A DNA stretch of 64,000 bases from Mytilus edulis (taxonomy: Eukaryota), in NCBI RefSeq assembly GCF_963676685.1, contig NC_092345.1, positions 29,078,001 to 29,142,000 of the forward strand, read 5' to 3'. Shown here one piece after another: positions 5,654-49,684 of the stretch; position 1 is the stretch's first letter, and the number at the start of each line of letters is the position of its first letter. The notes under the pieces were generated by a model. That model was not told the origin of the DNA, did no database searches, and was given only the letters and a program-made list of their open reading frames with translations. A program made the position numbers and the translations under genes.

Positions 5654-7389
5654 GTAATAGATTTTTTTCTGTTCTCTTGTTTAAGTTTTAATTCATGCAG
5701 TTAAAATTAATATCATTTATGTAAACTTATCAGTAAAACAAGATCTTAAATTAAGTCAATTTACAAATTTGTCAACAACTGATGATAGGAGTTATGGTTT
5801 ACCCTTTAATTTCGATTTTTATCCATTGTTTCATTTCGATTTAACATTTTACAAAAAGAAACACAAACTGTAAACACCCACCAGAAATTATCAATAAGAT
5901 AAGATAAAGAAACATATCAGATTGCTGATATTGTCCATTTACCTTTATGTGAGTAATGGCCTTAAATGATGAATTTAAACCAGCTTTTCAATTTTTGTTA
6001 AAAGTATCAAACAAGATCAACACGTTGTCATTAGATTCCTTAAGCTGTCATTTGTCCATGTTGTCTACTTACATCGTCTATAAGAGACTTTCAACTTCTT
6101 TTCTTACTTTTTCTGTATGAATCATGTAATGTATCCAACTTTTAAGTTCCAGTACAACATTCATAAATGCTGAATATTTTAAGATAGATCAAAATTTACA
6201 CTACAGCCCATACTGCGGTCAATGTACATTTGGTATATAAAGTTGTACATTGACTGATAGTTATCGAACATCGGTATACTACTGTTGCCTTTATTTTTTT
6301 ATAATTGTGTAAAGTACTTTGCTTAATAAATGTGAATTATTTTCTGTGTTTGCTTTGACCAGTATTGCAAGTACATCAAGGAGCTAAAGTCTTGGTGTAC
6401 TCTTAGTTCAATTTTGCCTTATACGGAAGTTTTGATTAAATACCCTGAAAAGACCACTAACATACCATTCAAAAGCTTTATACCCAGCTCCATACAAAAA
6501 AAACAACCCCAACCATAATGTTTCATTTTATTAGATCTGTGTTTTAATTACTTGTGAAGTTCACAAAATGTCATTATTAATCACTCTGCAAAAATCCATG
6601 TAACCCTAACATCATGATGGTTTCTTTACCAAAACGTACAGCCAAAACTGAAGTAGAAAATGTGACATAGATGAAAAAATTATATTAGGTATAACCAAAC
6701 TTTGCATTTTGAAGATTAAAGTAACAATTTGGAATATCAAAAAGTAATTATTAAACATTGCATTCCAATAAGAAACATTTCAACACTAGTATCATAGATG
6801 AAGGGTATATAATCATGAACAATTACCTAGTAGTGTTTTAATGAAAGAAGCGTAATGAATTATGTAAGAATAAATGAATATCTTTATACGATCAGGTTTT
6901 CGAGTATAAACATATTTGAAAAATGCTTATTTACAACTTGATCTACAATTTAACATGAGAAACACAGCTAAAAAAATACTCTATGTCAAATGAAGGTAGT
7001 TTAGATTGTTCATATGATTTTACACACTATAAGAAGAAATATGTGCATAATGTGATATAAATGGGGATAATTTTATGCTTCTCATTGATATCATAACTCT
7101 GAAGTTTAGTTTTTATTGTTTCTTTCAATCTGAACACAAAACTGATGTTTTATCATATACACCATGCTTCCTCCCTAAGTAAACTTAGAGATCCTGGATA
7201 GCCGTCGTTAAACATAGAAATTTGTATAAAACTACTTTAACTGGTTCCAAAAAGATTCCATTGCATAAATATTTACAGGCAATGAGTTTTGTGATTATTG
7301 TACTGCCTTGAACAAGTACAGTGACAGAGTGCATATTTTCCTTTACGGTTAAATTCTGTAAAAAATTCGTAAGGGTTCCATGGAACCCA

Positions 7390-8062: not shown

Positions 8063-9612
8063 AAATCTACCATGGACTTATTACTAATCTATATCTTGAA
8101 TACCTGATTTACCTTTAGAAATTGGAATCTTTCATATAACATACATAAAAGTACAAATGTAGCCCTATCTTTTGAGAAAATAAAAACTTAGGGTCATGCG
8201 GTATTTTTGGGCATTCACTACATGGTCTTGTTTACAAACACTGTAGATTCAAACTTTATTCCTTTACTGACCCAAATTTCTTTTCAATCCTGTAGTAAAA
8301 ACAATTAGTACATTCAGCATTCTTTTTTACAATTTGTTTTTACTCTAGTGTTGATCCATCTATCAAAAAATATTTATTACAAACATTATCTACCAATCAG
8401 AAGGGCACAGGACTTCAGTTTTATACAGCTGTCCCCCAATGTGCGGTCCCTGATGACGTTAATTGCTTTACTGAATTTACCAAAGTAGACTCCTTAAAAA
8501 CCAGTTTACTCCTAAAATTACTATTAATGGCTAATTGTTTTAAGTTTATATATTTTCTATTAATTCTAATATATTGATCGAATCAATTTTAATTGTGGTT
8601 TCCTAAAAATTATTCACTTGATCATAATATGATTTTTTTTAATTTGATATCACAGATTCAGCTTAGTCTATCTCTTATATATACATATCAAAATTGTATT
8701 GAATAAAGCCGTTTTCAAATGAAGTTTACAGTTTGTTATTATTTTATGCATTTTCTTAGGTTAAGTTGGATTAGTGCACGTACAAACATATTAACACCAC
8801 ATCATTATGTTTCCTTTACATGTACCTATTTTCTAGTCAGCAGCCTGTAATTCGGCGGTTTTTATCTTTCATATTTTCTTTGCGTTTAATGTTCTGTACA
8901 TAAAAAGTAAAATCACAAAAAAACTGAACTCCTAGGAAAATCCAAAAAGGAAAGTCCTTAATCAAATGGCAAAATAAAATGCTTAAACACAAATAACTAA
9001 TTGATAACAACTGTCATATTCTTGAATTGGTACAGGCATTTTCTTACGTAGAAAATTGTGGATTTTACCTGATTTTTAAAGCTAGCTAAACCTCTCTCTT
9101 GTATGACAGTCGCATCATGAACCATGAAATAAACAACTATGTGGGAACACCACAAACAGACACAATAGGTATAAATGTAAAAAATAAGGTTACAATAGTC
9201 AACATTGTGTTAAAATCCGTCGTTTAAATGTTCTACATTTTGTATTGCCAGGGCATTTTATAGCTCACTGTAGGTTATGGGTGTTGATCATTTTGAGGAC
9301 CGTACGATGACCTGTTGTTGTTGGTATTGGACATACCTGATATAGTGTATTCCTTAAATGTAGTTAGTGCACACTGATTTCGATCTATTTATACTATATT
9401 GAATTAACACACTTTTATAATGTAATTTAAATTGTATATATATGGCCATTCTTCTAAATTTCTGACAATTGTCGGTCTAAATCATTTCCATTATTAAACA
9501 TGTAAAAATATTATCTGTTTTCATCTAATTGTATCGGACCTAATGCATTTTTAATATTTGAAGTTTTTAGAAAAGATTGAATACCAAATCAAATATGATC
9601 CTTTTGTTTCAG

Positions 9613-39291: not shown

Positions 39292-40545
39292 ATAAAATTT
39301 AAATAATTTTGCAAAGCTTTGTGTTTATTCTTTAATTTTAAAATATAATAATTTGGTGCGTCTGAAATGAATTTCAGGATTTGACTTTATCACGAAAGTT
39401 TTATAAACATCAAAAGACCGAGAGACAAGGGTACATAGCATGACTAAAAGGGACCGTAAAAGAACAGCCAAAACTCTATGGTCATTACTTTATAGAGTTA
39501 AAACGTCAGTTCTTGAAAGCTTTTAATTCAAAAAAATATGTTTATGTATTTCTATTTGTATCCATGTTATTAGTTAAGCCTTTTTTCAACTGATTTTTAT
39601 AGTTCTTTTTGATGTTGTTCTGCTACACCAGTGTCCCAGGTTAGGAGGAGGTTTGGGAGTCCGCTAACAATAAGACGGTTAGTTTTCTCGTTTGAATTGT
39701 TTATCGTTTGTCATTTCGGGGCCTTTTATAGCTTACTTTGCGGTACGGTGACCTATAGTTGTTTATTTCTGTATCATTTGGTTTCTTGTGGAGAGTTGTC
39801 TCATTGGCAATCCTACCCCATATTCTCTTTATATGTTATAGGTAAAAACGTCAAAAATATGAATACAGCTGTCAACATTGTTTAACCATAGTAATCGCTT
39901 TTAAAACAAATAAATATGTAACAAAGAAACAAATAAAGGCGTACAAAAAAAAAGCACACCAGCAAATATGACAGACACGTATACATACCAAATTTTACAA
40001 TAGTACAGTAACACAATGACGGGATGTGTAAGTACAGAGCCACGTCATATGTATCAAAGAAACACAAAAAACATATAGACATAGCAACTAATCGATATCA
40101 ATATCAATCACTTTGACAGTTTCCAAAGAAGATAGAATATTTTCTTTCATTTGAATACTTTACGTACAGTTTTTCTTCCCGACGGTAATACACTGCAATT
40201 CATCAGGATTTGCCTGCATTTTGTTTTCTTTGAACAAAGCAATAAGCACTCGATACTCAGACTTCGGCGTGGATATACGTAAATTAAATTGTACCTGAAA
40301 TGATTAAGGACAAGGTATCATCATCAGCATAATTATATAAGAAACAATGTTTCATAAATTAAAATAAACATCCTGTAGAAAAACATTAAATAACAGTGGA
40401 CCATAAATTGATTTGAGGGTAACCATCTGGTTGTAAACCCAACTACTCAGAACACCATTGACTTTGATTTGATTTCTTCTATAAGAAAAATATGAGCTGA
40501 GGAGAATACTGAATATGTAGATATCCAATAAGCTTGTAATTTGTC

Positions 40546-41078
40546 CACAGGTGCTTGAGGACAGGATCCTGTATGAGCCCCGTATAGTTCCTCCCCCTTA
40601 TTATCATAAATCTCAGATTTTTCTATATATATCACTTATTTGTACCATATATATACTAATATACCATATTTATACTCTAAATATGCATGTTTACTATAAA
40701 TGTGAATCTCGACTATAGAGCGAAGCGAAAGGTTGCCAACTTCGTTTCAAGAAATTGGGGCTATGGTCGGGAAAAAATGTTTTAAAATCTAACAAAATGT
40801 CACTTACCGGTCTAATCAACGAGTACTTGCTGTTCCCATATAATTATCCTTATCGAATATCAATATCCAGACATAATATATAACTGTTTAAACACTTTTA
40901 ATTAATTTATTCGCTGGCGGTGTTGCAGTTTTTTTGTCCATTCAACTTCGATCAACGGAAGTTACAAAACAACGACATCTGTGTGGTCTTCAGCTCAAGA
41001 AGGATAACTCCACCTGAAAACGCGGGAAATTAGATGAGTTCCGAGAAACAATATACTGATCGAAAAGGTAAGAGAATT
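40546..41078 (+). repeat. Left terminal inverted repeat (~533 bp)
   Basis: Reverse complement of 47604-48033 plus 49070-49177, with only scattered mismatches. Confidence 0.95.
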
Positions 41079-41142
41079 TCGCATATGTAAAAAATCTATA
41101 GTTATACAGAAAACGTAAACATTGTAAAATAAATCTAAAATT

Positions 41143-44100
41143 ATGTTAGACGAGGATCAAAAGATAGCTTTTGAGTTAGCAAATGGGCACAACCTTATTA
41201 TAAGTGGTCAGGCAGGAACAGGTAAATCCTTTCTTCTCAAATATATAGTAAAGGACCAGCGTGAAAAACAGAAGAATGTCGCTATTGTATGTTCAACGGG
41301 TATAGCATCCACTCTTTACAAAGAGTTGGGAGCCAAAACATTGCACAAATGGGCCGGGATAGAGAATGGGAGGCATCTTAATGAGGAAATTATACACCTT
41401 GTTCAATCAGATGAGCGTTTTATGTCTGTTAAACATAATATCCAAACAACAGATCTCCTTATTATTGATGAAGTGTCAATGCATGGTTAGTGCTAAAACA
41501 TTTAACAAAGTTGAGGTTCTATGCAGAAAAGTTAGAGATAATAATAAATACTTTGGAGGGATACAAGTAATTTTGTCGGATGACTTTTATCAATTACCCC
41601 CAGTTCCAAATAAAATTATTGGAGATTCTGGTAGCCACTGTTTTAAACTGCCATGGTTTGATGATTACTTCCCACACAAAGTACAATTAAATATAATTCA
41701 CAGGCAAAGTGAAACTGCATTGATTCAGTGTATTAATGCGCTTTAAAAGGGAGAAGTTTCCAATGAAAATGTAGCTTTTTTGAATTCCTGAGATCGTCCA
41801 TTGCCAAATGAGGACACAGCTGTTCATCTTTATGCTAGGAACTATGATGTGGATATATTTAATTATAATAAACTACAACAGTTGCAAGGGGACCTTAAAA
41901 CTTATAAATCTACTGATGTAGGATCTGATTTTTATTTGCGAAAGTATTTGGCACCAAAGAATTTGGGTCTAAAGGTTGGTTGTCATGTTATGTTTTGAGA
42001 AATTTAAGTGATACATTAGTAAATGGATTGTGTGGTACGGTCACTCAACTAAACTCAGATTCAGTTGATGTGAAATTTATTATTAGCAATAAGTTATCCA
42101 CAGTTACACTGAAACCTGTCGTGTTTACTACATATGATCCTGCAGATAAGGAATATCTTGCAAAAAGGACTCAAATACCGCTTAAGTTAGCTTATGCTAT
42201 AACTATTCATAAGGCGCAAGGCATGAGTTTAAAAAGGGTCGTTGTCAATTGCGAATACTGTTTCCAACCAGGACAAATAGGCGTGGCAGTAGGTAGGGCA
42301 GAACAAGTTGAGGGTCTGCGAGTTTGCAACTTTAAAAAATCAATGTGCCGAAAGCACCCTTCCCATGATTCAGATTTTTATAACAATTTTACATTAGGAA
42401 TTTTGAAGGATGATCTTTCATGCTGTAGACATGTTATAGAGAATAATGGAGAAAAAAAATGATGACTCTGATTCTGATGATGAAGATGATAATGATGACG
42501 ATGATGATAGTAATGATAATACATGTACATATGCCATTGATGATAATTTTAACTCTGATTCTGATTTCTCTGATAGTGAAATTGAAAAACTAGAAGTTCT
42601 TGATAGTTTCATTGAAACTAATGTTTTGACTAAAGATCAATCATCATCACAAGCTATTGATTCTGTTTTCAATGAATATGTTGGGTCACAATTAGAAAAT
42701 GATATGAAATCTTTCAAAATGACAATTTTAGAAAAAAAATTCTATTTTTGATGAGTGGTACCAATCACAGATATCAGTTATTGAAGATATTGGACTGATA
42801 AGTCTTCCGGAAGGAGAAAAAACTATACAGCTAAACAACAACACGATTTTTTTAATGAAATTTCATAAACATTTCAATTCAGAGGAGTATGTTAATAGTG
42901 TCAAGTCTACTATAAGTATGTATTCCAAAGATGAGGGTACATCTGCAATATATTATCAGTTTATGACAGCTGTTTTATTTTACTTGGAAAGGAGATTTTT
43001 TGAAGATTTACCTTCTCATTTAAATTTACAGGAGCCAGAATCAATTAAAAACATTCCCACATCTGATGAGTTGTCTTCCCCTGCAAGAGGAAAAATTAGA
43101 TATATTAGTGGCTATGTCCTAGCTAAATTAAAACATTCTTTGTTTGTTGTAGGATCAGAATCAAAATTAGCAAAGCTTCAAGATCAAATGAACATATTAT
43201 CTTCTCTTTGTTCCTCCTATGATGTCTTATTGAATTCTAGCATTGATCCAGAAAGTTTAGAAGAGACTAAAAGAAAACAGAATGAGCGTGAATGTTTAAC
43301 CAACATTACTGATGTAACTTTTGATTTCTTTAGTAAACTTGAAACTTTGTGTAGACAAAAACTTTCTCATATAAATCTTGTTGAGCATGGAAAAAATTTA
43401 TTCAGCTATGTCACAGATGAAATTTTGAATGACAAATGTTTATTTGATTTATGGGTTCAAACACTTACTAGTAATTACAACATCCAGTGTACATCCTCAG
43501 ACAATATTCATAATATTATTCACTCCATAACCCTTTCAAGTGAAAATTATATAGACATTTACAATTCAGCTGTGCATCTGTTTTTGAAGGTTTCTTTCAG
43601 TCAATTCAGAAGGGATTATTTAACTTTTCTCAAAAAAGAGAAAGGAAAGGCGCTTCGTAAGAAAGTATCAGAGAAATCAAAGAAGGTGGTGAAATCTTTT
43701 AATATATAGATATAGGAAGATGTGGTGTGAGTGCCAATGAGACAACTCTCCATACAAATAACAATTTAAAAAGTAAAACATTATAGGTTAAAGTACGGCC
43801 TTCAACACGGAGCCTTGGCTCACACCGAACAACAACCTATAAAGGGCCCCAAAATTACTAGTGTAAAACCATTCAAACGGGAAAACCAACGGTCTAATCT
43901 ATATAAACAAAACACGTATATATTACATAAACAAACGACAACTACTGTACATCAGATTCCTGACTTAGGACAGGTGCAAACATTTGCAGCGGGATTAAAC
44001 GTTTTAATGGATCCAAACCTTATCCCTTTTTCTGAAACAATAGCATAACATCACAACAAAGAAAAACATACGATAAAATATCAATTGGCAGACTTAACTC

Positions 44101-44779
44101 AATCAAAAATATGCAATTTTTGATTGAAGACAAGTCAAAGGACAAAGAAAGTTCACATTTGCGACTGAAATCAGAACTTATGCAGAATGAAAAGTTTCTT
44201 TCAGAAAATTCTTTCACTAAGAAAGAATTGCTTATGTTATGTCTTATGTACAATGTAAAAATTTCCACTCAAAAGCGAAAGGAAGAAATAAGTTCTGAAT
44301 TGGGTAAAGCAATATTAAAAAGTGATTGCATACCATATCCGGATAAAAGTGATGTTTCTGGAACAGGTGCTAAGCCAATTTCTAACATTATAGTTTCAGC
44401 AGCTCCTCAAACAATGGACTCAGAAGTTCCAGGCCCTAGTAATGTACATGTAGCCTCTACATCAACTGGTTCCTTGGCTTCAGAACTCTAACCTACAATT
44501 CAAAATAAAGATAAAATACAATCAAATAAAAGGAAAACTTCAAGGAGAGGTAAAGGAAAGGGGAAAGGGAAGAGTAGAAAGAAAAATATTCCTATATCTG
44601 ATGAATCTGATGACAAATGTACTGTGTGTAATAAGCCAGATATTGGAGATGAGGATTGGATATGTTGTGATGCTTGTACTTTATGGTACCACAGGGATTG
44701 TGCAAACTTACAAGATGATGAAATTTGGACTAGTCTTAGTGTAGAAGGTGCTGCCTTCACCTGTCCACTGTGCCAATAA
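41143..44779 (+). pseudogene. Transposon-encoded Pif1-family (SF1B) DNA helicase fused to an acidic tract, a helical domain, a SAP-like motif and a C-terminal PHD finger
   Basis: GQAGTGKS (I), STGIAS (Ia), TLHKWAG, LIIDEVSM (II), FGGIQVILSDDFYQLPPV (III), HRQ (IV), LKVGCHVM.LRNL...VNG, QIPLKLAYAITIHKAQGMSL (V), PGQIGVAVGR (VI). D/E tract at 42460-42600. PHD CTVC...WICCDAC..WYH..C...CPLC at 44618-44773. Broken by several frameshifts, stops and one insertion. Confidence 0.9.
43706..44107 (-). mobile_element. Repeat family C insertion disrupting the Pif1-PHD ORF
   Basis: Flanked by an AATAT duplication; removing it restores KSFN-MQFL in frame. Confidence 0.85.
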
Positions 44780-45127
44780 AGTATATTCCCAGGTAATTTG
44801 TTGCTTTTATGTAGATTTATATTTATCAACCCCCCCCCCCCCCAAAAAAAAAAAAGGGAAATGGGTGATTTTTATTTCATCTTAGATATTATTATGTATA
44901 ATTGCTAACGAGACTACTTTTTATCTCTGTTCTGCATAACTTTTTTTTTAAATAATTCTTTTAACACATTAGAACATTTTTTTCAGTTTTCAGTTTCAGT
45001 GTTATATTATATATACATTGTATAACAATGTATAACATCTAATGTGGTTTAACATTGAGTTGTGGGGTATATGCAAATGACAGCAACCTAACAAAAATAA
45101 GAGCAAAAGCCATCTGCATGGCAAGGT

Positions 45128-47529
45128 TCATTCTTCAAAATTAAACCATGATTGTACCTTTTTATTTGCCTTAACTGCTTGGTTCAATTGTGCTCCCTCT
45201 CCACCTCCTGCATTAGATTTGCGAGATATTGATGTCTGTCCAAGAATAACTGAATTAACTGAATGACAGTAACCTAGATATGCTGGATTAGTATTAGCCC
45301 CATTATGAAGTGTTCTCTGTTGGAAAAATATGTTCTCTATGACATCACTATTAACACGACTTGAAATTATTGATGCATTTGAACACTTGAGTTTATATAT
45401 ACACATTTCTTCAAATCCCGTAATAGAAGAAATTATATCTTCCCTAGTCTGATGTGATATAAGATGTTTTTCCTTATTTTTTATTTCAATGTTGTCTTTA
45501 ATCATTTTTTCCCACTCAATAAACCACTGTAAAACATCATTGTTTTGTTTAATCCTCTCATCGCTTATATCTGTTACAGGACGCGAGTCTTTGAAGTTTT
45601 GGATGAGCACGCTTGTTTGCTGTAGCAATTCTATGGTTTCATCAACATTTGTTCCAGCATCACCTAAGCTTGACTTGTAAAGTTTCATCAAATGTAACAT
45701 TTCATTATTTAAAACGTCCTCTGCTAAATGATTCCTCATTTTATTTTCTGATGTTAAGAACATGTGTTCTTGTGTCAGTTTATGATGAACTGGGAATGGG
45801 TTCGTTGAAATGTCCCATAGATAAGCCTGTTTAAAGTGAGTCCATTCTATAAAATTGTTCTTAAACTTTAACCTCCGTTTACTAAAAGCACCATCTCCTC
45901 TTTTAGAAATGTTATTCCTTATTTTCTTAATAATATGGCAAATGTCCTTGATAAAAAAAAAAAATTTTTGGCTGTCCTTGGGAGAAAAAATGTTTTAAAA
46001 AGAGCATGTGATTGCATTTACACTGTTAAAGTTTGGTAACAAAATTTTGAAAAGGTCTCTATTGCTTTGTGCCCCATCAGTACTGATATATTGAATTGTA
46101 AATCCAAATGCAGATAACATATTAACTGATTTCCATACAAGTAAGTAAAGTTCATGTCCTGATGCAGTATGAGAAGGAAAATGTGCAAATGGAAAACGGA
46201 AACCTGTAAATTCTAAGAAAACTAATTGAAGAACATGTGTAGCAAGAGTTCTTTCTTTTTTATTACTCTTTATTTGCTCAAATATAATTGACTCTGGTGA
46301 ACATTCAGTGAAACCAATCAGCTCTATATTGTGTTTACGCTTGCGAAATTGCAAATCTTGTTGAATAGACATTTCATCTATAATAAGTCCACCTTGATAT
46401 CCCTCAGGGGGTATACCTTTCATTGTTGCTTCATTTCCCATCCAATCTAACATATCACTATTAATGCCTGCCTCTTGATAAACAGAGTTTTTATAACGTC
46501 GAAGCAAGTTTTGGGATGGTAATATTATAAAATTGCTAATTCTCAATTCACTATAGCCCCTTGGACTCCTGCAGTACAAAGTTAAACACAACCGTATAAT
46601 TTCCTTGTTCCACCTCCGGCCATTTGGGTTCCTTTCTAATGCCATTTTTTGACTAAGTAGAAATGTCTGCATTTTCATAGAACAATCAGGGGAAATTTTT
46701 GTCAAAATGTCACTCAAATCATTATGATCAGTCTCACTTCATTATCATGTGTATTGTTGTCATTTAAGTTTATATCATTATTATTTTTTCATCTATGTCA
46801 CACTTTTGTTCTCTTGTTTGAATTTTTGTTTTCAATTTTTTACAGTTACCACAACACAAGGAGACAGCATTAGAGTTTTTGAATGGTAAAACCTTACAAC
46901 ACGTCTTGGCACGGAACCTTATTTGTTCAGAGTTCTCGTCACCTACAAGACACACTTGCTCTTCAAAATGAGGTAAATCTTGCTCAACACTGTTAACGCC
47001 ACTACAGTATCTAAGTTGTTTTATCAATTTAAATAGAGATTCAACTGAATTTATTGTCATTGAAAACTTTTCCTGAAGTCCTATCTTTTCAAGTCCAATT
47101 TCCCATCACTAGGAGAGAAATACCACCATCTGATTCTAATTGAATTTCAATCATTATTTTACTACCGTTTATAATTTCTCCTGTAAAATGTCCTATTTTC
47201 ATTGATGTTTGTGTTTTTGATATTACAAAATAGTCTTCAGGGAGAAGAGTTTGAATGTCAATAAATAATATACTAGGCTGACTGATTGCGTCCTGTTTCC
47301 ATGACAAACCATAGTATCTTTGGGTAGATTTACACCAGTTTTCCTTTGAGCGACCTGATTTTATTTTTACATTGTTGAAAACTTTTTTAATAACATTACC
47401 CACAGCAGAATTTGTTACTTCAAATTCACATTTTTTCTTAATTTCAATGAGATCAACAAATTCAGATTCGTTGCATGGTTGTAAATTTTCTACAACCCAA
47501 GTGAAAATGGGTGTTTTGTTCGTTGCCAT
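45128..47529 (-). pseudogene. P-element/THAP9-family transposase with an N-terminal RFX-like winged helix, frameshifted
   Basis: GRRWNKEIIRLCLTLYCRSPRGYSELR...LPS (P HTH region), IIDEMSI (D1), ISTDGAQSNR (D2), DICHIIKKIRNN (~45910-45947), KMRNHLAEDVL (insertion domain), NSDVIENIFFQQR...NTNP (E). Pieces are ORFs 47089-47529, 46770-47060, 45995-46717 and 45128-45763. Confidence 0.9.
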
Positions 47530-48033
47530 CTCTATTTACTATTTTTTTCCACAGTTTAAGATTTTTTTCACAGTTAAAAATTTCCGCCAAATAAACAATT
47601 TGTAATTCTCTTACCTTTTCGTTCAGTATATTGTTTCTCGGAACTCATCTAATTTCCCGCGTTTTCAGGTGGAGTTATCCTTCTTGAGCTGAAGACCACA
47701 CAGATGTCGTTGTTTTGTAACTTCCGTTGATCGAAGTTGAATGGACAAAAAAACCGCAACACCGCCAGCGAAAAAAATTAATTAAAAGTGTTTAAACAGT
47801 TATATATTATGTCTGGATATTGATATTCGATAAGGATAATTATATGGGAACAGCAAGTACTCGTTGATTAGACCGGTAAGTGACATTTTATTAGATTTTA
47901 AAACATTTTTTCCCGACCATAGCCCCAATTTCTTGAAACGAAGTTGGCAACCTTTCGCTTCGCTCTATAGTCGAGATTCACGTTGATAGTAAACATGCAT
48001 ATTTAGAGTATAAATATGGTATATTAGTATATA

Positions 48034-49069
48034 TGTAGGACTCAAATCTATGGCGGGTTCCAAATCTATGGCAGATTCCTAATCTATGGCAAATGTGACG
48101 TTACAAACGCCAAACAACTCAAATCTATAGCAGATTTTTGTTTACTCCAAATCTATGGCAGATCTTGGGGAAAAAGTACCGTATAACGTCACAATTAAAT
48201 ATTACGCCATATTGCACATTCGCCGCCGCTAACGATGGCGGAACCCATACATTTGAACACCATTCAAGATGAAGATATTTCTCTGACGACCATTTGCGGG
48301 TGGTTTAAAGGAAGATGTAACCTATAATCCCGAAGATGGACCAAATGTGATGTACTGGCCGAATCCCGCAATGAATTATGGCGCCGCTATTTTCAGTACC
48401 GCATATTTTAGAAAAAAGGATATTTTGAACCCTTAATTGCTTGCTGGCTTCGTGTTGAAGGCCGTACCTTGACTTATACTGGTTTACTTTTAGAAATTGT
48501 AACTTGGATGGAGAGTTGTCTCATTGGCAATCTTACCACAACTTCCTATATCTAGTTAGATGAAGTTTACAGTCTACGGCTGGAAAAGTTTATAAAATGA
48601 TATATAAAATTACCGGATACAAATTTGATTTAAATCGTCATCAAATAAAAATGATGTATTAATGATATCGCTGAAATAAATATTATTTATCTTTATTTGT
48701 TAATTTGTTATTTTTTTTTTTATAAAAAGCGGCCTTCTTGTTTGTTAAAGGTCTTTGAAGGTATACAAATTTATCATTTATGATTTTTTTTTTCGGTTGA
48801 CCATTATGGAATGTATATTTCACAAATGTTTATAGGTATGCTCCCGTTGTCGTATTTTTCCACTTGCTTAAGACAAGTCATTTGTCGAAAATGTACTGCA
48901 TTGTTTTCCATTTGCACAAAACTTGCCATATATTTGTAAACAACATAAATCCGCCATAGATTAGTAAATTACAAAACTTGCCATAGATTTGGGATGACAT
49001 GACGTCACATTTACCATAGATTAGGAATCTGCCATAGATTTGGAACCCACCATAGATTTGAGTCCTACA
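48034..49069. mobile_element. Non-autonomous TGT...ACA element (Ginger-like) inserted in the right TIR of the P element
   Basis: TIR TGTAGGACTCAAATCTATGG with repeated AATCTATGGC motifs. Relative to the intact left TIR, the site has gained 4 bp (TATA). Confidence 0.85.
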
Positions 49070-49684
49070 TATATATGGTACAAATAAGTGATATATATCG
49101 AAAAATCTGAGATTTATGATAATAAGGGGGAGGGACTATATGGGGCTCATACAGGATCCTGTCCTCAAGCACCTGTGAATTTGTCCAGAAAAATAGCGTG
49201 ATCTTATCATTCAAATGCCTTTTAAACGTCAACAGAGACAGCTGCAATAAAAATGGTTTGATCTAGAACCTTACGTCACACTACTAGTCAACTAAACAAT
49301 GCAGTTAAACATCCGTGCATAAAAAAATAATCAAAATAGTCATACGACGGTATATCAAAAACCTGTTCATACACTTTAAATAAATCGACAAAACAGTAAC
49401 ATAGTGATAATAAGATTTAACAAATTGTTGCGGTGGTACTTGAGCTTTTTGAGTATACCAGAGAAACATCTATATTAACAGACAGTTTTATAAACCTTGT
49501 CAGCTGAAGTTTATCACAGATTTACTCTCGCCAATAAATTTTGCTGGTATGCCATCTGTACCCATTGCCATTTTGATGATGATCTTATTCGCATTTTTTG
49601 TCAATTTATGAGACGTCAATGAATCAGATGTCTCATTTACTTAAATATTTTCTTTATTCATCCCTTTATCCTTGGTTGCTATAA

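Follow-up and report, generated by a model that had tools for sequence, protein, structure and literature searches.

The question raised by this locus is whether a Pif1 helicase gene that lies beside a P-type transposase gene is part of the transposon or a passenger within it. The locus is in a 64,000-nt stretch of the Mytilus edulis genome (NC_092345.1, positions 29,078,001 to 29,142,000; C2:29078001-29142000 in the 1.37-Gb genome that we searched), hereafter called the window. A transposon of 8,632 bp occupies window positions 40546-49177, and the original prediction, made from the letters alone, took it for a P-superfamily element that carries its own gene for a Pif1 helicase with a PHD finger as an integral two-gene design. 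Recurrent pairing of the two genes, an intact relative elsewhere in the genome, congruent gene trees and selection on both genes bear out this proposal, and we are highly confident that the window element belongs to an integral two-gene P lineage.

The boundaries of the element were read directly from the window sequence. Both ends read CACAGGTGCTTGAGG, and the 8-bp flanks on the left (40538-40545) and on the right (49178-49185) are both AATTTGTC, an exact target site duplication (TSD), in agreement with the limits proposed at the outset. By inverted-repeat analysis, the left terminal inverted repeat (TIR; 533 bp, 40546-41078, plus strand) pairs at 96-97% with two segments on the minus strand, an inner part at 47604-48041 (pairs I1 and I2) and an outer part at 49069-49177 that includes the terminus (pair I3), and the two arms diverge by about 3%. 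The anticipated TIR length of about 530 bp was correct for the left arm, but the right TIR is not continuous: it is split by a 1,027-bp element at 48042-49068. The first ATGs, at 41143 for the helicase and 47529 for the transposase, are located 64 and 74 bp from the inner TIR ends, where about 65 and 75 bp had been estimated.

In the rest of the genome, the window TIR recurs many times, mainly in the form of 1.11-kb TIR-TIR derivatives. Ten such derivatives carry CACAGGTGCTTGAGG at their ends, and each is flanked by a perfect 8-bp TSD of its own; since two of these TSDs are reverse complements of one another, that pair may be a single locus that was assembled twice, and 9-10 insertions are counted as independent. 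Because these 9-10 independent derivatives have their own different TSDs, neither the ends nor the 8-bp TSD length of the window copy is due to chance.

The window copy itself is dead, and both of its genes are pseudogenes. They are convergent and lie tail to tail, with the helicase on the plus strand and the transposase on the minus strand. The accessory-protein pseudogene (41143-44776) encoded, in order, a Pif1 core, an acidic linker, a helical region, a SAP-like motif and a PHD finger. In tblastn, amino acids 1-1083 of an intact 1,084-aa relative tile positions 41146-44773 in shifting frames, with four or more frame changes, which give at least five segments, and a premature stop at 44489-44491; pieces of plus-strand open reading frames (ORFs) at 41143-42462 match PIF1 (PF05970) with E values of 2.6e-16 and 1.6e-9. 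On this strand we placed the helicase core at 41143-42432 (Pfam and tblastn; Walker A is GQAGTGKS in the window copy, and the motifs are kept in intact relatives), a helical domain with the fold of the C-terminal domain (CTD) of P transposases at 43059-43685 (hereafter the CTD-like domain), a SAP-like helix-extended-helix motif at 44108-44329 and the C-terminal PHD finger at 44609-44773, the start of the last being approximate. The size of about 1,075 aa given for this protein in the original prediction fits intact relatives of 1,031-1,118 aa, but for the window copy it can only be a reconstruction. The transposase pseudogene (45128-47529, minus strand) is of the P/THAP9 type, with an RNase H fold and a predicted GTP-binding insertion and without a C-terminal domain. 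Amino acids 4-782 of an intact 796-aa relative tile positions 47535-45203 in tblastn, the reading being broken by an in-frame stop and two or more frame changes, and the minus-strand piece at 45995-46717 matches TNP-like_RNaseH_N (PF21787; E 8e-14).

At least eight divergent families in M. edulis carry the same pair of transposase and Pif1 genes. One of these families is intact and consists of ten near-identical copies of about 8.16 kb on four chromosomes. The copy at locus L032 (869-9035; 8,167 bp) has 606-bp TIRs that are 100% identical, CACAGGTACTTGAGG at both ends and its own 8-bp TSD, GAAAAACG, which differs from that of the window copy. It contains uninterrupted ORFs for a 1,084-aa helicase and a 796-aa transposase, which start 37 and 39 nt inside the TIRs and end tail to tail, 1.2 kb apart. 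Intact pairs in other M. edulis families encode helicase and transposase proteins of 1,108 and 766, 1,118 and 490, and 1,031 and 789 aa. Across the lineage, the TIRs are 0.5-0.6 kb long and in several families start with CACAGGTRCT; the genes are usually convergent, each beginning about 40-75 bp inside the TIR. One protein encoded by the intact relative matches the NCBI entry 'PIF1 [Mytilus edulis]' at 100% identity.

Some further features of the intact family were recorded. Six of the ten 8.16-kb copies are located on C6 (81.4-89.7 Mb), five of them within 0.6 Mb, and two of the clustered copies are arranged in a tandem-like manner (L031); local hopping of the kind known from Drosophila P could account for this, as could segmental duplication or an effect of the assembly. 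At C1:37946830-37947232, a 403-bp mini-derivative consists of two 200-bp TIR tips of this family joined head to head. The tail-to-tail spacer contains a very high-copy repeat (L032:5400-5800), over which contig depth is in the thousands compared with about 10-300 over the gene bodies.

To see how regularly the two genes occur together, we searched the genome with a piece of the transposase and with the non-helicase part of the accessory protein. The matches formed neighbouring pairs 3-6 kb apart, at 34-75% identity for the transposase and 26-53% for its partner, and the Pif1 C-terminal module was present 3-6 kb from nearly every transposase locus at least 34% identical to the window piece. Beside more distant P-type transposase loci of M. 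edulis (e.g. C8:80887042, C10:60592001 and C465:32279), no Pif1 neighbour was seen in the same search. The original prediction had allowed that other copies of the transposase might lack Pif1, or that the Pif1 segment might have termini of its own; Pif1 proved to be present in other members of the transposase clade as well, and the Pif1 segment is not bounded by ends or a TSD of its own.

Metagenome contigs scanned with the transposase alignment yielded 80 loci. A convergent Pif1 gene on the opposite strand was found in 26 of the 28 loci with at least 2.5 kb of sequence downstream of the transposase, and one further locus has Pif1 upstream, head-to-head with the transposase. At least ten different data sets are represented, and many contigs come from related samples, so the 26 pairs do not amount to 26 independent observations. 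One metagenome element, L056 (629-12648; 12,020 bp, ends CACAGGTGCTAG, TSD TCGGTAAT), shares with L049 a three-gene layout: the transposase is head-to-head with a stand-alone 661-aa ORF for the helical, CTD-like, SAP and PHD parts, and a third gene downstream encodes the helicase core. In more distant relatives, namely L039, L040 and L041 (C2:81.09 Mb, C5:82.81 Mb and C9:68.51 Mb) and L055, transposase and Pif1 are head-to-head and Pif1 is in exon-like pieces; these loci may be either mobile elements or domesticated pairs.

In protein searches, the accessory protein was also found in Mytilus coruscus, M. galloprovincialis, Pinctada imbricata, Ruditapes philippinarum, Saccostrea cucullata, Pecten maximus, Argopecten irradians, Tegillarca granosa and the hemichordate Ptychodera flava, and relatives of the transposase were found in T. 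granosa, P. imbricata and the gastropod Littorina saxatilis. The C-terminal module alone retrieved 805 clusters at 50% identity from a library of 1.8 billion proteins.

We compared the trees of the two genes in 19 elements that have both, each tree being built from a query-anchored alignment of the core of the respective protein. Nine of 16 splits were common to both trees, whereas in 10,000 trials with permuted labels the trees had 0.26 splits in common on average and never more than 4. The patristic distances of the two trees were correlated (r = 0.86, Mantel p = 1e-4), although relatedness inflates such statistics. The congruence of trees that had been suggested as a check on the pairing was thus observed, and because the shared clades span the whole tree, it argues against repeated independent capture. 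We further estimated dN/dS by the Nei-Gojobori method. Between L036 and L038 (dS about 0.1), dN/dS was 0.19 for the helicase core, 0.51 for the C-terminal part of the accessory protein and 0.21 for the transposase; between L044 and L050, the values were 0.11, 0.20 and 0.09, respectively. Between families, synonymous differences are saturated (pS 0.7-0.8) at a pN of 0.25-0.35, yet ORFs longer than 1,000 aa have remained open. These sequence comparisons indicate that both genes are under purifying selection and that the helicase is as strongly constrained as the transposase.

The transposase was assigned from its domains. PF21787 was detected in 20 of 20 aligned relatives and the GTP-binding insertion, PF21788, in 6 of 20 (best E 6.9e-7); from the domain match, this insertion is predicted to lie inside the RNase H fold. 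With the family profile as query against the Protein Data Bank (PDB), the sole sequence match was the Drosophila P transposase, 6P5A (E 1.5e-9), aligned in three collinear blocks: DEM at D230, a GBD block (D..H..K..RN) and NxDxxExxF at E531. The P-type DDE transposase named in the original prediction was therefore confirmed, and the homology of the transposase together with the TSD places the lineage in the P superfamily. Four conserved cysteines (C173, C211, C227 and C230) suggest the presence of some zinc-binding module. The protein stops about 58 residues past the catalytic glutamate, whereas the Drosophila enzyme runs 220 residues further, with a linker and an all-helical CTD. Because the chain ends so soon after the catalytic glutamate, the transposase lacks a Drosophila-type C-terminal domain; in 43 of 43 homologues, no more than 29 residues extend beyond the end of the profile.

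The accessory protein consists of the Pif1 core, an acidic linker, a helical region including the CTD-like domain, a SAP-like motif, a disordered linker and a PHD finger. In intact relatives, Pfam detected PIF1 (PF05970, E 6e-24 to 6e-36), Pif1_2B (PF21530) and PHD, and the helicase motifs are conserved (Walker A GQAGTGKT, Walker B IIDEISM, the Pif1 signature FGGIQVIL.GDFYQLPPV and the 2B domain). The top PDB matches of the core were yeast Pif1 (1.4e-61) and human PIF1 (5e-49); Helraiser gave just 5e-15. We therefore assign the helicase, from its sequence, to the SF1B Pif1 family of the cellular type, with predicted ATPase and 5'-3' unwinding activity. By Pfam and motif alignment, the protein begins directly at helicase motif I and has no Rep/HUH domain; the lack of this domain had led the original prediction to argue against a Helitron. 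The PHD finger has the C4HC3 zinc-binding pattern and the corresponding fold, and its profile is nearest to those of H3K4me3 readers (Alfin-like, DIDO1, TAF3, BPTF and Pygo). An AlphaFold model of residues 450-1084, based on an alignment of 32 sequences (mean pLDDT 76.7), showed a confident helical region, a disordered linker and the PHD finger.

The domain that the transposase lacks has a structural counterpart on the helicase protein. In an exhaustive alignment of the helical domain against 48,161 PDB representatives, the top hit was 6P5A chain B, residues 617-734 of the Drosophila P transposase, i.e., its CTD. In the Drosophila complex, the CTD contacts the looped-out single strand of the transposon and the target DNA (PMC7776569). 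A hidden Markov model of the CTD-like domain matched nearly every element, each time on the strand that encodes Pif1, and among the proteins collected, 157 have the CTD-like domain, 43 are transposase homologues and none is both. In intron-bearing contigs of the ERZ type, the helicase and the CTD-like domain are kept, and the SAP motif and the PHD finger were not detected.

Other comparisons did not return the same match. Foldseek against the PDB gave PHD fingers only with the large model and nothing with a model of the domain alone, and a search of the ESM Atlas gave no usable match. An hhalign comparison of the helicase C-terminal profile with the transposase profile showed no similarity (probability 0.6%), no P-transposase C-terminal family was found by Pfam in 32 accessory C-terminal regions at E values up to 1, and the best 60 PDB matches of the accessory-protein profile were only Pif1 tails and PHD fingers. 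Prediction of a complex between transposase residues 330-796 and the CTD-like/SAP domain scored 0.00, which speaks neither for nor against binding. That the CTD-like domain is a true relative of the transposase CTD, supplied in trans, may well be right, though we put it a little below an even chance. A split transposase, in which the C-terminal DNA-binding domain moved onto a second protein fused to the Pif1 helicase and the SAP-like and PHD parts, with the helicase protein as an obligate subunit of the transpososome, is possible but somewhat more doubtful. In that case, strand transfer would be physically coupled to a repair/replication helicase and a chromatin reader.

Regarding expression, we compared L032:1400-7399 (6,000 letters) with contigs of four sequencing runs, one of which is recorded as metatranscriptomic RNA. 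The contigs span both gene bodies without internal joints. A joint at L032 1590|5945 with GT..AG ends occurs in all four runs, and a second joint, seen as one loose end in one run, links the GT donor at 6119|6120 with the AG acceptor at 8400|8401. All ten genomic copies are unspliced at both sites, so the joints are best read as splicing of a plus-strand read-through RNA. This RNA omits the helicase body and the antisense transposase body, connecting the first 26 helicase codons to a 175-nt exon and then to the right TIR. The exon is located just past the transposase stop codon and overlaps the last transposase codons in antisense orientation; the first splice donor is the Walker A codon pair GGT AAG, and the joined frame stops after 32 codons. 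The read-through RNA could serve as a regulatory isoform, or it could give rise to antisense transposase RNA.

P elements are textbook cut-and-paste transposons that gain copies via homology-directed repair of the donor gap, and Pif1 is the helicase that drives D-loop migration in break-induced replication. To our knowledge, donor-gap repair of P elements has so far been credited entirely to host factors. A two-gene P lineage working in the following way is, probably, the best overall explanation of the locus. The transposase would excise and integrate the element as P elements do. The CTD-like and SAP-like parts would draw the accessory protein to the transposon ends or the transpososome, and the PHD finger would draw it to chromatin. 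The 5'-3' helicase would promote long-tract repair synthesis across the donor gap of about 8 kb, and this synthesis would restore the element from the sister chromatid, each jump thereby adding a copy. The near-identical TIRs would probably supply both promoters.

For the helicase, the original prediction had offered restoration of the donor site or opening of the target DNA. This proposal is plausible and fits the data on gap repair by Drosophila PIF1, which promotes repair synthesis of at least 2.5 kb after excision of P{wa} when POL32 is absent (bioRxiv 10.1101/554550). Whether in donor-gap repair or inside the transpososome, the action of the helicase is one that we infer. Known P-element biology and the Drosophila PIF1 data point to gap repair, and we propose only tentatively that this would be the main role of the helicase.

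A rival to this proposal, which we regard as possible but rather doubtful, is that the helicase protein is a transpososome subunit providing the missing CTD in trans, where ATP-driven unwinding, instead of serving later repair, would part the staggered ends left by cleavage (overhangs of 17 nt in Drosophila P), deal with the looped single strand or open the target DNA. None of the 43 transposase homologues has a CTD and the CTD-like fold sits on the helicase protein; moreover, in L056 and L049 the CTD-SAP-PHD module is an ORF of its own head-to-head with the transposase, so the module is tied to the transposase rather than to the helicase. The contacts of the Drosophila CTD with transposon single-stranded DNA and target DNA (PMC7776569) are in line with such a function. 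On the other hand, the fold match comes without sequence support, the canonical P transposase is well established to work in vitro without a helicase, and work in the transpososome is compatible with an additional role in gap repair. Another view, which we consider unlikely, assigns the accessory protein mainly to targeting or anti-silencing: either the PHD and SAP parts would guide insertions to origins or H3K4me3-marked promoters, or R-loops or G4 structures of the long TIRs would be removed by the helicase, and copy gain would not need the helicase. The PHD profile, closest to H3K4me3 readers, agrees with this, as does the preference of Drosophila P for promoters and replication origins as summarized in PMC7776569 after Spradling et al. 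2011. However, the ERZ-type contigs keep the helicase and the CTD-like domain with neither PHD nor SAP detected, and the conserved core therefore appears to be the helicase plus the CTD-like domain, not the chromatin reader.

Two other explanations deny the helicase a place in a P-type mechanism. That the Pif1 gene is a passenger, either a captured host gene or a nested independent element with no role in transposition, we judge to be very improbable. Its core is of the cellular Pif1 type, so Pif1 was probably captured from a host at some point, and the window copy alone could not have excluded nesting. Nevertheless, the same pair is found in at least eight divergent families and in 26 of the 28 informative metagenome contigs, the gene trees are congruent, the helicase is under purifying selection equal to that on the transposase, and the intact ORF starts 37 nt from the TIR with no separate termini or TSD around Pif1. 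Nested insertion as the origin of Pif1 was rejected for the recurrent pair, the congruent trees and the absence of its own ends or TSD. Helitrons also carry a Pif1-family helicase, and the element might in principle be a Helitron-like rolling-circle element or a chimera with one; to this we give hardly any credence. The protein begins at helicase motif I with no Rep/HUH part, the helicase is far nearer to cellular Pif1 than to Helraiser, and TIRs and 8-bp TSDs are present; Helitron identity was rejected on these grounds.

Several observations weigh against the explanation that we prefer, a two-gene P lineage whose helicase would aid donor-gap repair. The role given to the helicase is a proposal, and in Drosophila the pif1 single mutation had little effect on gap repair (bioRxiv 10.1101/554550). 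The TSD was verified in one of the ten intact copies, and Pfam detected no THAP domain in 20 transposase relatives at E values up to 0.05. Three of the four runs used for expression are RNA by guess only, and contigs cannot prove transcription, strand or level. Five contigs (L052, L057, L058, L064 and L066) show a short Pif1 with no CTD-like part detectable within the available sequence; together with the three-gene L056 and L049 and the head-to-head, intron-bearing L039-L041, they indicate that the design is not uniform.

Apart from its two genes, the window copy contains later insertions. The 1,027-bp element that breaks the collinear right TIR (48042-49068) is an unrelated, non-autonomous TIR element outside the P/Pif1 family, with 74-nt inverted ends of its own (pair I4). 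These ends are made of CAAATCTATGG-type repeats, duplicated AT-repeat sequence is present on both sides, and the TSD looks about 6 bp long. In the helicase pseudogene, a repeat insertion of about 450 bp (43659-44107, approximate boundaries) was recognized as the gap between tblastn segments ending at aa 847 and resuming at aa 862. Copies of one short interspersed repeat occur here at 43659-44107, just outside the transposon at 39670-39825 and inside the nested element at 48446-48571, and form inverted pairs I5-I9 at 76-87%. Elsewhere in the genome, fragments with 70-86% identity to the window helicase C-terminal region were found on C11 (e.g. 6834698, 7460062, 8536936, 8752252, 23527204 and 26535367); all are on that one chromosome and all contain stops.

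The original prediction knew of no published description of such a lineage. Likewise, our full-text search of the literature, with Repbase and Dfam (which may hold entries) outside it, found no P-type transposon described with a Pif1 gene. What is new here is a transposase that ends right after its catalytic fold and a helicase protein that, by its structural model, appears to carry a P-CTD-like helical domain. PIF1-like helicase genes or domains have been listed in non-syntenic or hemizygous regions of bivalve genomes with no link to P elements (PMC9646362; bioRxiv 10.1101/2020.09.15.298695). Judging from sequence, the annotated proteins are of the same family, and many bivalve 'PIF1' genes are probably genes of these transposons; recognizing them would improve gene catalogues and analyses of presence and absence. 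The intact copies in M. edulis are nearly identical and appear to be transcribed, which suggests that the element is active in a mollusc; it could be developed as a tool for use in molluscs.

The lineage is also a natural experiment: a transposon with its own Pif1 under selection as strong as that on the transposase asks how far donor-gap repair limits transposon fitness. If the CTD has been relocated, the lineage provides a concrete, testable model for the way in which accessory proteins are wired into a transpososome. Furthermore, after AcademH and KolobokH it represents a third independent case of helicase gain by DDE transposons, with a different helicase superfamily. AcademH and KolobokH are similar to this lineage in that a DDE transposon recruited a helicase as an accessory function, but they combine Academ and Kolobok transposases with an SF2 RecQ-type helicase (PMC9587614, PMC10045372), and their TSD lengths differ from that found here. 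Membership in either group was rejected because this lineage pairs a P-type transposase with a Pif1 rather than a RecQ helicase.

Compared with Drosophila P and human THAP9, the lineage has the same 8-bp TSD and also has TIRs, but no THAP domain was detected in its transposase. It differs from Drosophila P in having two genes instead of one and TIRs of 533-606 bp instead of 31 bp, and in that the CTD is not on the transposase, a domain of that fold being present on a second protein with Pif1 and PHD. Galileo, 1360 and Foldback-like elements of the P superfamily share with it a P-type transposase and very long TIRs (PMC3573991); Galileo, however, encodes the transposase only, and no helicase gene has been described for it. 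As in the RepHel proteins of Helitrons and Helentrons, a Pif1-family helicase is borne by a transposon, but in those elements, which transpose by a rolling circle and have neither TIRs nor TSDs, the helicase is fused to an HUH Rep nuclease, and the similarity between the helicases is 5e-15 as against 1e-61 for yeast Pif1. The nearest helicase core, with all motifs and the 2B domain, is that of cellular PIF1 (yeast Pif1/Rrm3, human and Drosophila PIF1), which is known to act in break-induced replication and, once a P element has been excised, in the repair of long gaps (bioRxiv 10.1101/554550). Unlike cellular PIF1, the helicase of this lineage is encoded inside a mobile element, is without the cellular N-terminal region and has a C-terminal extension of about 640 aa that contains the CTD-like, SAP-like and PHD parts.

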